Shown piece by piece: positions 6,182 to 49,552 of a stretch of DNA of 64,000 bases (position 1 is its first letter; every line of letters starts with the position of its first letter). The notes under the pieces were generated by a model that was not told where the DNA came from, did no database searches, and saw only the letters and a list, made by a program, of their open reading frames with translations. The stretch spans positions 4,468,123 through 4,532,122 of the forward strand of contig NW_002060944.1 of assembly GCF_000150275.1 (NCBI RefSeq), in the 5' to 3' direction. The position numbers were made by a program, and so were the translations under genes. This stretch comes from Trichoplax adhaerens (lineage: Eukaryota; Animalia; Placozoa).

Positions 6182-7387
6182 GATACAGTAGAGTAAAATG
6201 ACCAGAAAAAATTTCTGATCCTTGAATTTTCCACACACGGTATGATGCATAGTTAGCTAATGCATGACTATAGTAATAATAATAACTAACTATTTAAATA
6301 ATTATTAATAACTACTGCACTTAGCTTCCACGAATATTTAATTAGTAGATTTGTAGATACAGTAGAGTAAAATGACCAGAAAAAAATTTCTGATCCTTAA
6401 ATTTTCCACACACGGAATGATGCATAGTTAGCTAATGCATGACTATAGTAATAATAACTATTTAAATAGTTATTAATAACAACTACTGCACTTAGCTTCC
6501 ACGAATTAATTAGTAGATCTGAAGATACAGTAGAGTAAAATGACCAGAAAAAAATTTCTGATCCTTGAATTTTCCACACACGGAATGATGTATAGTTAGC
6601 TAATGCATGACTATAGCAATAATAACTGTTTAAATAATTATTAATAATAACTACTGCACTTAGCTTCCACGAATTAATTAGTAGATCTGTAGATACAGTA
6701 GAGTAAAATGACCAGAAAAAAATTTCTGATCCTTAAATTTTCCACACACGGTATGATGCATAGTTAGCTAATGCATGACTATAGTAATAATAACTATTTA
6801 AATAATTATTAATAACAACTACTGCACTTAACAACAACTGCACTTAGCTTCCACGAATTAATTAGTAGATCTGTAGATACAGTAAAGTAAAATGACCAGA
6901 AAAAAATTTCTGATCCTTGAATTTTCCACACACGGAATGATGCATAGTTAGCTAATGCATAACTATAGTAATAATAACTATTTAAATAATTATTAATAAC
7001 AACTACTACACTTAGCTTCCACGAATATTTAATTAGTAGATCTGTAGATACAGTAAAGTAAAATGACCAGAAAAAAATTTCTGATCCTTGAATTTTCCAC
7101 ACACGGAAGGATGCATAGTTAGCTAATGTATGACTATAATAATAATAATAACTATTTAAATAATTATTAATAACAACTACTACACTTAGCTTCCACGAAT
7201 TAATTAGTAGATCTGTAGATACAGTAGAGTAAAATGACCAGAAAAAAATTTCTGATCCTTGAATTTTCCATACACGGAATGATGCATAGTTAGCTAATGT
7301 ATGACTATAATAATAATAACTATTTAAATAATTATTAATGACAGCTACTGCACTTAGCTTCCACGAATTAATTAGTAGACCTGGATA
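6182..7387. repeat. Tandem array A: 7 copies of a ~168-174 bp unit (one copy 184 bp)
   Basis: The anchor GATACAGTA recurs at 6182, 6356, 6524, 6692, 6876, 7047 and 7218. The units are highly similar. Confidence 0.97.
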
Positions 7388-8899
7388 GTATGATGATCAA
7401 AGTAGAGTATGCGTAAAAGTCTGCAACTCAAAAATTCCAGTTTTTATCGCTATTCCTCGAATCGATTCTCCGCCTCGAACTACCCTGTGTCTACCCGCGT
7501 CCACCTATTTTAATTAAATAAGTTCTCAATTTCGTAATTTCAGCAACTCTTGACGTACAGTATGTGGCCCCAATGGGTGCTGCTCATCATCAAGACAACG
7601 CTTGAGCAGTAAAGTGGCGTTCAGTGGCTCAACACTGCAGTAAAATCTAAGTTGAAAGTTTGCATGATATTGAAGTTAGTTAAATGACGTCGTATTATCG
7701 CAAATTGCCTATTGCACATAGGCTATAAGTATCCTAATGTAGTTAGAAGTCAGCCAGAGTTGACATTAGATGTTACTATTTCAATCGGGTAATCGCCCCC
7801 CCCTTTTAGAACTGCTATCGAAAACAGCACCTAACTAGGCTTGGAGGATGACTATGTAGAAGTATAGTTTCTCAGGAATTCCGTTGCATTTGTAATCTTA
7901 GTATGATGAGAAAAAAATCGAATTATGATTAGTATCCACTGAAGATGGACTACGATCTTGCATGCGTACACAATTACACACTATTATGAAACTCGAATAA
8001 AGTGCAGTATAGGGTTTAGTATGCGTAAAGCACTTTTTACCTCCTATTTTTAGACTAGTCGATCGAAGGGTAGTAATGCGGATATGCTCACTGACTGACT
8101 TGGTCAGTCTTCAGTTATATTTTGGTAATGGTATGCCTAGCGACTCAATAAAAGCCTAAATAAAAAGATAACACTGAGAGGGCTTAAAATCGTTATAGAT
8201 GAACGATGGATTATTTAATCCTATACCATTAACTATAAGTCTGTCATTCATAGTACAGTATATAGTAAACCTATTGAGATTTATTCAGAGCATACAGGTA
8301 GAGTAGTCAACGACTTCAAAAGTTATACTGTAGTAACTTAGCAATCGAATAGACTATCGTATACAAGATTATAACGTAATTTACATAGTAACTACGGTAG
8401 TTCAGGCCACCGAGCCTAAGATGGCTACTACTGAGACTTCTCACAAAGTTAGTACTTCACAATACATACTATCGATAAAATACATTTTCCTAGCAATAAA
8501 GAATTCTACGAGTACACATTTAAAAAGTTTTTTAATTCACATGCATGGGCTTCATTTAGAGTTTAAATGTTTCATAATTTATAGCGAGATTGTTATCATA
8601 ATAGCAATTCGTAATTCTATTATATAATCGATATCAAAGATATAGTTATAATTTCAATAACATATTTACAGAATCAAGATACTATACAATGTTGAGTGTT
8701 AATAAGAAAGTAAATTATAGTCATACGTGTACTTTATAAAATTTCAGGCTATTCACAAAGTTCGATAGCTTTACTTTAGATGCAAATTTGAACACAACTA
8801 TCGCAGCTGTTTATAGTAATCGAAAAACATAAAATCTAAGAAACTATATAAAAGGCATAAGCTTTATAGCAGTTTGACGTTGGAAATGCGTGCGTTGCA

Positions 8900-9383
8900 T
8901 TTATTAGCATTTAGTCAAGGTTAGTTTCATTGGCCTATTTGGAGTTAAAGTTATTCTATTTGTCGCCTCTATTTCATGAAGGCTGCTGCAGCCGATGACA
9001 AACCTAATAGAAATATTTTGATCAAAAATTAGTATTAATATAACCTAAAATGAATAATTCTTGCGTATATTATATTAATTATTTATTTTAAACAGAATGA
9101 ATTACTATTTTACTTAAGGAGCTCTAATAATCTTCGATGTATTATCTGTTTCACTCCCTAGTAATTTAATTACCTTAGCTAGTAGAAGGTGCATCTCCAG
9201 CTCTGCAATACGTCGGCCAATACACATTCGAGGTCCAAAATCGAATGGAACAAACTTAAATCCAACCCTTCCGACACTTTCTAGGTGGATTCCTTTTATC
9301 CAGCGTTCAGGTTTAAATATCTCGGGTTCCGGATAAATTGACTCATTGCGAAACACCTCATACAGGCAAGCTATAACTGTCGT
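8900..9383 (-). pseudogene. Partial duplicate of the last two exons of the adjacent cytochrome P450
   Basis: 9383-9174 encodes TTVIACLYEVFRNESIYPEPEIFKPERWIK...FVPFDFGPRMCIGRRIAELEMHLLLAK, a close copy of exon 11490-11280. The next exon copy lacks 11 nt (ATGGTTAAAAG), causing a frameshift. No copies of the upstream exons were seen. Confidence 0.75.
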
Positions 9384-48093: not shown

Positions 48094-48306
48094 CTTGAAT
48101 TTTCTGTCAATTTTTTTTCCTTCTTTGAAAATTGGAAGAGCCACGTAGTTTGAGTAGCTCGAGCTGGTTGACTGAATTTCAATGGCAAGAACAGCCTAGT
48201 GGAACACTTTGCTCAATATTACAGGAATACTATGGAGTTGATAGCATCGTACTGTATGTACCATACTGTTTTGTTCGCTACCGCTTTCCGTACTGAGAAG
48301 CACTGA

Positions 48307-49552
48307 GACCGGAGACCGGACTGGAGTCCAGTCTAGAGTCATCTCAATGGTAGATCGATCCACACCATTGTTGTGGTGTTGTCAGTATGGAGTATGAAGC
48401 GACAACAACACACTGCAAAACGCGACACTGGTAGAGTATGCAGTGGTACAGTACTGTAGTGTGACGCCACTACTGATGTCACTCTCTGTAGTTCAACGCC
48501 ACCGCTGTAGTGACGTGAATCACGTGATACTTGCACTTCACTTTGGTATGACGCGATGACGCGATGACTGCTGTCACAGACTCACAATACTGAGTACGTA
48601 ACTACGTCTAACTGAATTCTATCATACTGTATTACTATTTCTGTCCTAGTGTTGAAGTACTATCCCAAGCTGTCCACAGTTTACAAAATCGACAGCATCC
48701 GTCGGTCCAGATTTCTGTAATAGGAAAATCGCGGATGACCGGAGACCGGACTGGAGGACAGTCTAGAGTCATCTCAATGGTAGATCGATCCGTACCATTG
48801 TTGTGGTGTTGTCAGTATGGAGTATGCAGCGACAACAACACACTGCAAAACACGACACTAGTAGAGTATGCAGCGCTACAATACTGTAGTGTGACGCCAC
48901 TACTGATGTCACTCTCTGTAGTTCAACGCCACCAGTGTAGTGACGTGTAATACTTGCACTTCACTTTGGTGTCAGTATGACGCGATGACTGCTGTCACAG
49001 ACTCACAATACTGAGTACGTAACCACGTGTAACTGTATTCTATTATACTGTATCACATCTTCTGTCCTGGCGTTCAAGTACTATCCCAAGCCGTCTACAG
49101 TCTATAAAATCGACAGCATCCGTCGGTCCAGATTTCTGTAATAGGAAAATCGCTGATGACCGGAGACCGGACTGGAGGACAGTCTAGAGTCATTGTTGTA
49201 GTGTTGTCAGTACGGAGTAGGAAGCGGTAACAACACACTGCAAAACACGACACTGGTAGAGTATGCAGTGGTACAGTACTGTAGTGTGACGCCACTACTG
49301 ATGTCACTCTCTGCAGTTCAACGCCACCAGTGTAGTGACGTGTAATACTTGCACTTCACTTTGGTGTCAGTATGACGCGATGACTGCTGTCACAGACTCA
49401 CAATACTGAGTACGTAACCACGTGCAACTGTATTCTATCATACTGTATCACATCTTCTGTCCTGGTGTTCAAGTACTATCCCAAGCCGTCCACAGTCTAC
49501 AAAATCGACAACATCCGTCAGTCTGGATTTCTGTAACAGGAAAGTCGTGATG
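48307..49552. repeat. Tandem array F: 3 copies of a ~395-430 bp unit filling the RABL6/PTGES2 divergent promoter
   Basis: The anchor GACCGGAGACCGGACTGGAG recurs at 48307, 48737 and 49158, with high identity throughout. Confidence 0.97.

Follow-up and report, generated by a model that had tools for sequence, protein, structure and literature searches.

Tandem arrays on the promoter side of genes in Trichoplax adhaerens are probably ordinary locus-specific minisatellites

Seven tandem arrays lie upstream of genes in a 64,000-nucleotide stretch of the Trichoplax adhaerens genome (hereafter the window), and they are real, private to their loci and independent of one another. An earlier note on this DNA had read them as a possible system for amplifying promoter sequence. 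Like arrays are found in introns nearby, and we therefore regard those of the window, with a probability of about 65%, as ordinary locus-specific minisatellites, which can originate at any place in non-coding DNA and grow in copy number wherever a change in length is tolerated, and not as the work of a special promoter-amplifying system.

Arrays were detected with TRF, and those with a period of 70 bp or more were considered. All seven consist of head-to-tail tandem units, with TRF periods of 83–421 bp and 2.8–9 copies (Table 1). They were recovered where the earlier note had placed them, six at the usual TRF setting and the degenerate seventh (A7) at a lower threshold. The threshold also affects the starts of two others: A4 begins at 34675 (7.6 copies) at the standard setting and at 34627 at the lower one, while A6 begins at 48303 (395 bp, 3 copies) and at 48275 (period 395–421 bp), respectively. 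At the standard setting A3 spans 24955–25508. A higher-order period of 371 bp is also present in A2. Array DNA makes up 9.3% of the window, about four times the genome average.

Table 1. Coordinates of the tandem arrays and of selected neighbouring features in the window.
Feature	Position	Strand	Description	Basis
Array A1	6182..7383	.	168-bp unit x 7; units 94–98% alike	TRF, identity matrix
Array A7	15542..15901	.	degenerate 130-bp unit x 2.8; 65% matches	low-threshold TRF
Array A2	23966..24833	.	123-bp unit x 7; units 92–98% alike	TRF, identity matrix
Array A3	24952..25511	.	126-bp unit x about 4.4; units 82–88% alike	TRF, identity matrix
Array A4	34627..35538	.	114-bp unit x about 8	TRF, identity matrix
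Array A5	36141..36884	.	83-bp unit x 9	TRF, identity matrix
Array A6	48275..49552	.	unit of about 395–421 bp x 3.1; 46% GC	TRF
Putative RPL28 non-coding leader exon	5973..6024	-	pyrimidine (TOP-like) tract and GTAAGT donor	sequence reading
GCLM-like first coding exon	22997..23221	-	gene extends down to about 20946	ORF
Dense ACAGT/ACTGT cluster	25930..26127	.	ahead of the DARS2 gene (+ strand)	
Array-free divergent gap, CCDC151-like / DIM1 (TXNL4B)	55134..55807	.	674 bp; ACAGT cluster at 55441–55703	

Comparison of the seven arrays with one another gave no similarity at E<1e-3 and no further copy within the window, in agreement with the claim that they lack mutual homology. In whole-genome BLAST searches (105.6 Mb), each of the six clear units (A1–A6) matched its own locus only, which bears out the single-locus status that had been proposed, and the same was true of three intronic units from the adjacent sequence described below, nine units in total. 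Since the arrays are unrelated and each private to one locus, they must have originated independently and repeatedly, as the earlier note had held.

These searches also bear on the reading of the arrays as pieces of dispersed transposons or satellites, for example Mutator elements, or as artefacts of assembly, which is extremely improbable. Housekeeping promoters of placozoans often contain Mutator insertions whose terminal repeat includes a motif (PMC12221973), and these resemble the arrays in that repeat DNA is concentrated at such promoters in the same phylum; however, Mutator elements are dispersed and have a terminal-repeat motif in common, whereas each of the present arrays is confined to one locus and has nothing in common with the others. 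No relation to Rfam families (gathering score; E<=0.5) or to tRNAs (tRNA scan) was found, and the window holds no clusters of ACGG-type motifs. Together with the single-locus matches, these negative scans largely refute membership of a transposon or satellite family. As for artefacts, the units differ by 2–18% and have a consistent substructure, which is not expected of collapsed or mis-joined reads.

The manner in which the arrays grew can be read from their identity matrices, which in A1–A5 have homogenised interiors, diverged edges and internal block duplications. In A4, interior units are 96–100% alike and edge units 89–94%, with the non-adjacent units 4 and 6 being 100% identical, and A5 is composed of two subfamilies (units 1–4 and 8 vs. 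units 5–7 and 9). Diverged edges and block duplications point to stepwise unequal exchange, and therefore the arrays grew stepwise and not in a single re-replication or rolling-circle burst, two of the mechanisms that the earlier note had offered. Cruciform breakage, the third, is likewise unsupported: folding with DNA parameters, measured against dinucleotide shuffles, found no excess hairpin potential in the units (mean z -0.63; window arrays -1.6 to +0.1). The hallmarks of dedicated promoter amplification, namely cruciform-prone units and equal identity among them, were absent, and k-mer comparison found no motif common to the units besides TACAGTA. With no common structural hallmark, and with intronic arrays next door, the notion of a dedicated promoter-amplifying system is not supported.

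To place the arrays relative to genes, a gene map was made by hand from an exon-by-exon reading, and exons were searched one by one against Pfam and PDB. Exon calls from codon usage or ORF length were dropped, as they gave wrong strands and an antisense ORF in the ValRS gene, and missed exons of DARS2 and GCLM; Pfam searches with short exons were mostly blank. A1 lies about 158 bp upstream of the TOP-like tract in the putative leader exon of RPL28 (Ribosomal_L28e matches), which an intron of about 1.07 kb separates from the ATG exon (ATG near 4893). A7 is inside the divergent gap between a P450 gene (ATG 14356, -; Pfam p450) and an EMP70/TM9SF gene (ATG 17002, +; Pfam EMP70). The next gene is one that we take, from similarity to the human protein judged by eye, to be GCLM-like; its exon had no Pfam match and no PDB sequence match, and a plausible leader exon near 23670–23800 lies about 170–200 bp from A2, which shares the gap ahead of DARS2 with A3. 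DARS2 (mitochondrial AspRS, + strand) was identified from its C-terminal exon (30781–31002), which matches residues 539–594 of PDB 4ah6. A4 starts 147–195 bp from the ATG of a ZDHHC gene (34480, -; Pfam DHHC), and A5 ends 697 bp ahead of an ODR4-like ATG (37581, +; Pfam ODR4-like). A6 lies 182–210 bp from the RABL6 ATG (48093, -; Roc/Ras match, with the exon uninformative against PDB sequences) and ends only 95 bp from a PTGES2-like ATG (49647, +; Glutaredoxin/GST_N match). The similar short distances between array and gene, to which the earlier note had drawn attention, are thus found at RPL28, GCLM, ZDHHC and RABL6. Several arrays are necessarily made from promoter-region DNA; A6 is such a case, because it takes up 1278 bp of the 1553-bp interval that separates the divergent RABL6 and PTGES2-like ATGs.

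Within the window, four of the five divergent gene gaps have arrays, and a further array lies upstream of the RPL28 leader exon, while the introns and the four convergent gaps are free of arrays with periods of at least 70 bp. The difference between divergent and convergent gaps (4/5 vs. 0/4) has a one-sided Fisher p of about 0.04, computed by hand, in a window that was chosen on account of the pattern itself. Without their arrays, the four expanded divergent gaps would measure 275–2285 bp; the CCDC151/TXNL4B gap measures 674 bp and has no array, as had been reported. The claim that arrays are confined to the promoter side therefore stands inside the window but fails beyond it, where at least five of 12 arrays are intronic.

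These 12 arrays were found, with the same lower period limit of 70 bp, in a comparison sample, the 200 kb immediately to the left of the window (264 kb only for window and sample together), where they amount to 2.1% of the sequence, near the published genome average. One intronic array is in intron 1 of the valyl-tRNA synthetase gene, between the ATG exon and exon 2 (Pfam), and two are in the 2.85 kb intron 1 of flotillin (Band_7 match). The other two are in a pair of P450-like paralogs, each flanked by exons that are homologous and collinear between the paralogs, and the intron that matches each array-bearing intron has no array in the other paralog. First introns hold three of the five, and one of the five occupies an internal intron at a distance of over 1 kb from the start of its gene. 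No resolved array of this sample fell in a convergent gap, although convergent gaps were mapped in the window only.

The arrays may be explained by a simple course of events. A local non-coding stretch of about 80–400 bp would be tandemly duplicated, via replication slippage or unequal sister-chromatid exchange, after which further unequal exchange would let copy number drift both ways, with gene conversion keeping the interior units alike. Such duplications could be born anywhere in non-coding DNA, introns included, but arrays would reach high copy numbers chiefly in spacers that separate core promoters, where added length presumably does little harm. Long arrays would be found on the promoter side because 3′ UTRs occupy most of the convergent gaps and introns are mostly short. 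The recurrent distance of 150–210 bp may be the footprint of a core promoter and 5′ UTR kept intact, the divergent gaps may originally have been only about 0.3–1.4 kb, and a dedicated promoter-amplifying machinery would be unnecessary. Two-copy arrays are about evenly split between introns and gaps (4–5 of the eight resolved cases intronic), compared with one intronic array in nine among those of at least 2.8 copies (Fisher p about 0.04–0.08, by hand). The copy number of the window arrays is far higher than that of the arrays in the adjacent 200 kb (p=0.0014), for which the tolerance model has no explanation.

A modest association of arrays with promoters persists. ACAGT is a published promoter-proximal pentamer repeat of Trichoplax that has been located relative to genes (PMC2871265), and a dense ACAGT cluster occurs no more than 700 bp away from 6 of the 14 array loci, against 12–17% of random positions (p 0.004–0.02). 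The heptamer TACAGTA is present in 10 of 19 units, where 3.6 would be expected (P=0.0005). The arrays are hence like the ACAGT repeat in being promoter-proximal, with TACAGTA inside about half of their units, and unlike it in that ACAGT clusters have one common motif genome-wide while the arrays have long, unrelated and private units. In addition, 10–11 of the 14 loci lie within about 1 kb of a gene 5′ end, a borderline excess over the roughly estimated 46% expected.

Such an association may arise from mutational bias, an explanation that is possible but unlikely, in which promoter DNA is prone to de novo tandem duplication and arrays are preferentially born around gene 5′ ends, in upstream DNA as well as in first introns. 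This proneness could stem from nucleosome-free DNA or ACAGT islands, from breaks where transcription and replication conflict, or from recombination or replication origins linked to promoters. It is in keeping with the proximity to ACAGT clusters and the excess of TACAGTA, with the contrast between divergent and convergent gaps in the window, and with the share of intronic arrays found in first introns; human minisatellite VNTRs are also enriched at TSSs and over the first 1 kb upstream, with effects on expression in some cases (PMC8096271; PMC4857002). However, one array is in an internal intron over 1 kb from the gene start and another in a paralog's intron, two-copy arrays show no preference for gaps, and the window was selected for the pattern. 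Upstream gaps and first introns are moreover the largest unconstrained compartments, so that the baseline of about 46% leaves only a borderline excess. It is quite unlikely that the 5′ ends of placozoan genes are true birth hot spots for tandem duplications of roughly nucleosome size, perhaps seeded at ACAGT islands; if they were, promoter DNA would be multiplied repeatedly and independently, and would provide a fast-evolving, copy-number layer of regulation.

A selected function has also been considered, in which arrays multiply regulatory sites such as ACAGT, or space and insulate divergent promoters, so that copy number tunes expression. In humans and in yeast, tandem repeats within promoters are known to affect gene expression (PMC4857002; PMC3899988). 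The pentamer is dense in A3 and A6 (27 and 12 per kb, vs. 4.3 per kb in the window), and core-promoter DNA must fall in A6 and in a 224-bp array that ends 17–47 bp before a PIGK-like ATG; for these two only does the geometry suggest units that carry a working TSS or core promoter. Against this, A2 is pentamer-poor (2.3 per kb), TACAGTA is the sole motif common to units of arrays without mutual homology, and the CCDC151/TXNL4B gap and several divergent gaps of the adjacent region work without arrays. The arrays also range from fresh to heavily decayed, as expected of neutral turnover, and we consider a selected function very unlikely. Tandem copies of promoter-region DNA, which by their number can set the level of transcription, are known from yeast promoter repeats (PMC3899988) and from the spacer-promoter and enhancer repeats of Xenopus rDNA. 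In those systems function was proven by experiment, whereas the arrays here are known from sequence, and arrays of this kind are found in introns as well.

The arrays thus sit most comfortably among locus-specific minisatellites (VNTRs): TRF, BLAST and the identity matrices found non-coding tandem units of tens to hundreds of base pairs (within the range of roughly 10–500 bp), each unit searched being at a single locus, with the homogenised interiors and diverged edges that mark unequal exchange. They differ from classic human minisatellites, which have short GC-rich units, in being AT-rich with units of mostly 114–168 bp, and the VNTR label is defined by copy-number polymorphism, whereas these arrays are known from one assembly. 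In Trichoplax, TRF has detected 9,208 minisatellites with units of 7–1204 bp, covering 2.4% of the genome (PMC2871265; Wang et al. 2010). The genome here has the size and composition of the one catalogued, and the arrays are presumably among those listed; the catalogue did not place minisatellites relative to genes, but only the ACAGT microsatellite.

Read as minisatellites, the arrays mainly record ordinary turnover, and a pattern that is striking in one window is lost once the next 200 kb are considered. Transposons are almost absent from Trichoplax (0.13% of the genome; PMC2871265), and tandem duplication is therefore the main source of new non-coding DNA. The sites at which arrays arise and persist accordingly tell how first introns and the spacers between genes lengthen in the compact genome of an early-branching animal, and if the residual promoter association reflects mutational bias, promoters would have a simple way to evolve rapidly.

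The seven tandem arrays claimed in the window are real: Tandem Repeats Finder (TRF) at default settings returns six of them where they had been placed, and looser settings return the degenerate seventh (A7) and move the start of A4 to 34627 and that of A6 to 48275. No similarity was detectable among the seven arrays, or between them and the rest of the window. The earlier note had also proposed searching the repeat units against the genome, and in an assembly of 105,631,681 bp (1,414 contigs, ~33% GC, the window lying at 4,468,123-4,532,122 of a 9.74-Mb contig) all six clear units match their own locus only, the sole extra match being a trivial 40 bp of the A1 unit. 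An Rfam search of the arrays gave no family, even at E ≤ 0.5, and a tRNA search found none. Repeated independent birth of the arrays, as that note had it, holds. The 168-bp unit of A1 is exactly 56 codons long, and a stop-free frame of 195 codons runs through this array on the minus strand (6812-7396); the frame is probably due to chance, and its peptide does not look protein-like.

Arrays and genes of the window (window positions) and placed arrays of the adjacent 200 kb
Feature	Position	Strand	Detail
Array A1	6182-7383
Array A2	23966-24833
Array A3	24952-25511
Array A4	34627-35538
Array A5	36141-36884
Array A6	48275-49552
Array A7	15542-15901		130 bp x 2.8, 65% matches; looser TRF settings
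NDOR1-like flavodoxin exon	ATG near 2601	-
RPL28	coding 4421-4893	-	leader exon near 5973-6024
P450 gene	11247-14356	-
EMP70/TM9SF gene	17002-18987	+	intronless
GCLM-like gene	~20946-23221	-	putative, identified by eye only
Mitochondrial AspRS	end near 31002	+
DHHC palmitoyltransferase	ATG 34480	-
ODR4-like gene	ATG 37581	+
RABL6-like GTPase	42703-48093	-
PTGES2-like glutaredoxin/GST gene	ATG 49647	+
CCDC151/ODAD-like gene		-
DIM1/TXNL4B	from 55808	+
Array, ValRS intron 1			160 bp x 2.3; between lysine-rich ATG exon and second exon
Two arrays, flotillin intron 1			214 x 2 and 164 x 3; intron 2.85 kb
Two arrays, P450-like paralog introns			135 x 2 and 119 x 1.9; each flanked by collinear exons homologous between two paralogs
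Array downstream of aldehyde dehydrogenase gene			adjoins ACAGT cluster
Two arrays, Syf1/XAB2-PIGK gap			divergent gap
PIGK-side array (one of these two)	L041:3509-3948		224 bp x 2
Array upstream of UAP56-like DEAD-box gene

Genes were mapped from stop-to-stop ORFs checked by Pfam and PDB searches, with exons searched singly. The RPL28 leader exon has a pyrimidine tract at its start and a GTAAGT donor at its end. On this map the arrays sit in four of the five divergent gaps and the gap upstream of RPL28, with none in the window's introns or in its four convergent gaps (~0.7–2 kb each), which bears out, within the window, their claimed placement on the 5' or divergent side; the contrast of 4/5 with 0/4 is nominally significant (one-sided Fisher ~0.04, computed by hand). 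The array-to-gene distances reported earlier deviate by a few tens of bases at most, and the recurrent short distance is explained by the geometry of small gaps. Without their arrays, the four expanded divergent gaps would span 275, 901, 1444 and 2285 bp, against 674 bp for the divergent gap that has no array; in small gaps, a tolerated duplication would have to stop near the footprint of the core promoter and 5' UTR, ~150–200 bp. An 81%-identical direct duplicate (8881-9353 and 10958-11459) was also seen 2.1 kb downstream of the P450 gene, comprising its last exon (heme-binding region) and ~290 bp of 3' flank; it is an orphan exon or else an alternative terminal one.

Promoter-side confinement and absence from introns belong to this window and not to the genome, since private arrays are found in introns next door. 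The outside sample was the 200 kb directly left of the window only, joined to it as a 264-kb concatenate (window position = concatenate position minus 200,000); TRF found 12 further arrays of period ≥70 there, nine of which were placed by exon-level reading. Genome searches with three of the intronic arrays showed all three to be just as private as the window arrays. Valyl-tRNA synthetase was identified by a class I synthetase match, and flotillin has an unmistakable first exon with a GTAAGT donor at ~50436, its Band_7 exon starting at 53283 (concatenate). Four collinear P450-like paralogs stand in tandem on the minus strand (L037-L040, 122–153 kb of the block), two of which carry private intronic arrays, one in an internal intron; in both cases the array is missing from the corresponding intron of the second paralog compared, so these arrays postdate the gene duplication. 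The PIGK-side array ends 17–47 bp before the PIGK-like ATG, and the core promoter of this gene has therefore probably been duplicated; both this array and A6 are promoter-region DNA, because their gaps hold nothing else. Elsewhere in the block, a 50-N assembly gap lies within a long acidic low-complexity ORF (L033 ~2344-2982, minus strand).

Within the arrays, the unit pattern is the one typical of stepwise unequal exchange accompanied by homogenisation. Divergence is greatest in the edge units (in A4, 89–94% vs 96–100% in the interior), units 4 and 6 of A4 are identical although non-adjacent, and A5 splits into two interleaved subfamilies, a pattern at odds with a single rolling-circle or re-replication burst. 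Cruciform breakage is unsupported too: folded with DNA parameters, the units in general form hairpins no more readily than their dinucleotide shuffles (mean z -0.63; range for the window arrays, -1.6 to +0.1). Across the 264 kb, 13 of 19 array periods fall within 114–168 bp, about the length of DNA in a single nucleosome.

A residual link to promoters is seen. TACAGTA or its complement occurs in 10/19 units, against 3.6 expected in random same-length segments (P=0.0005), and no further k-mer is common to the units. Eight of the 19 arrays (6/14 loci) lie ≤700 bp from a dense ACAGT cluster, compared with 12% of randomly chosen positions (binomial p 0.004; 0.02 under a stricter baseline), and a rough count puts 10–11 of the 14 loci no more than ~1 kb from a 5' end, a borderline excess over an estimated ~46%. 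A real 5' mutational bias in array birth, a live rival that we consider unlikely, could underlie this link, but the link could also reflect no more than upstream spacers and first introns being the largest unconstrained compartments. Dense ACAGT/ACTGT pentamer clusters occur at 25930-26127 and 55441-55703 of the window and at 16 further places in the adjacent block (L025-L044), just upstream of DARS2, CCDC151/TXNL4B, ValRS/PIN1, TBCB, UAP56 and other gene starts. They are the promoter repeat published in 2010 as an ACAGT microsatellite upstream of Trichoplax genes, in an analysis that did not extend to minisatellite positions (Wang et al., 2010, PMC2871265).

Promoter-proximal private tandem repeats are of a known kind, because human minisatellite VNTRs are known to be concentrated at TSSs and in upstream regions (PMC8096271), and repeats in promoters are known to alter expression in both humans and yeast (PMC4857002, PMC3899988). 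A selected function of the arrays is a live explanation, and a rather improbable one. Mutator insertions have been described at placozoan housekeeping promoters (Kim et al., 2025, PMC12221973), but the arrays here are of another kind.

The earlier interpretation is upheld in part: some arrays are built from promoter DNA, and repeated independent birth stands, while the promoter-specific system and its proposed mechanisms find no support. The best reading, at a probability of about 0.65, is that ordinary minisatellites turn over here subject to a filter of tolerance, being born anywhere in non-coding DNA and expanding where added length is tolerated. For Trichoplax, 9,208 minisatellites have been counted, which amount to 2.4% of its genome; transposons account for only 0.13% (Wang et al., 2010, PMC2871265). 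Array DNA makes up 9.3% of the window vs 2.1% of the adjacent 200 kb, the latter near the published average, and median copy number is 7 vs 2 (p=0.0014), a regional excess for which the tolerance reading does not account. Arrays of about two copies are intronic in 4–5 of eight placed cases, and those of ~3 copies or more (2.8 and up) in only one of nine (hand-computed Fisher p ~0.04–0.08); new duplications therefore arise in introns and gaps alike, with long arrays building up in intergenic spacers.
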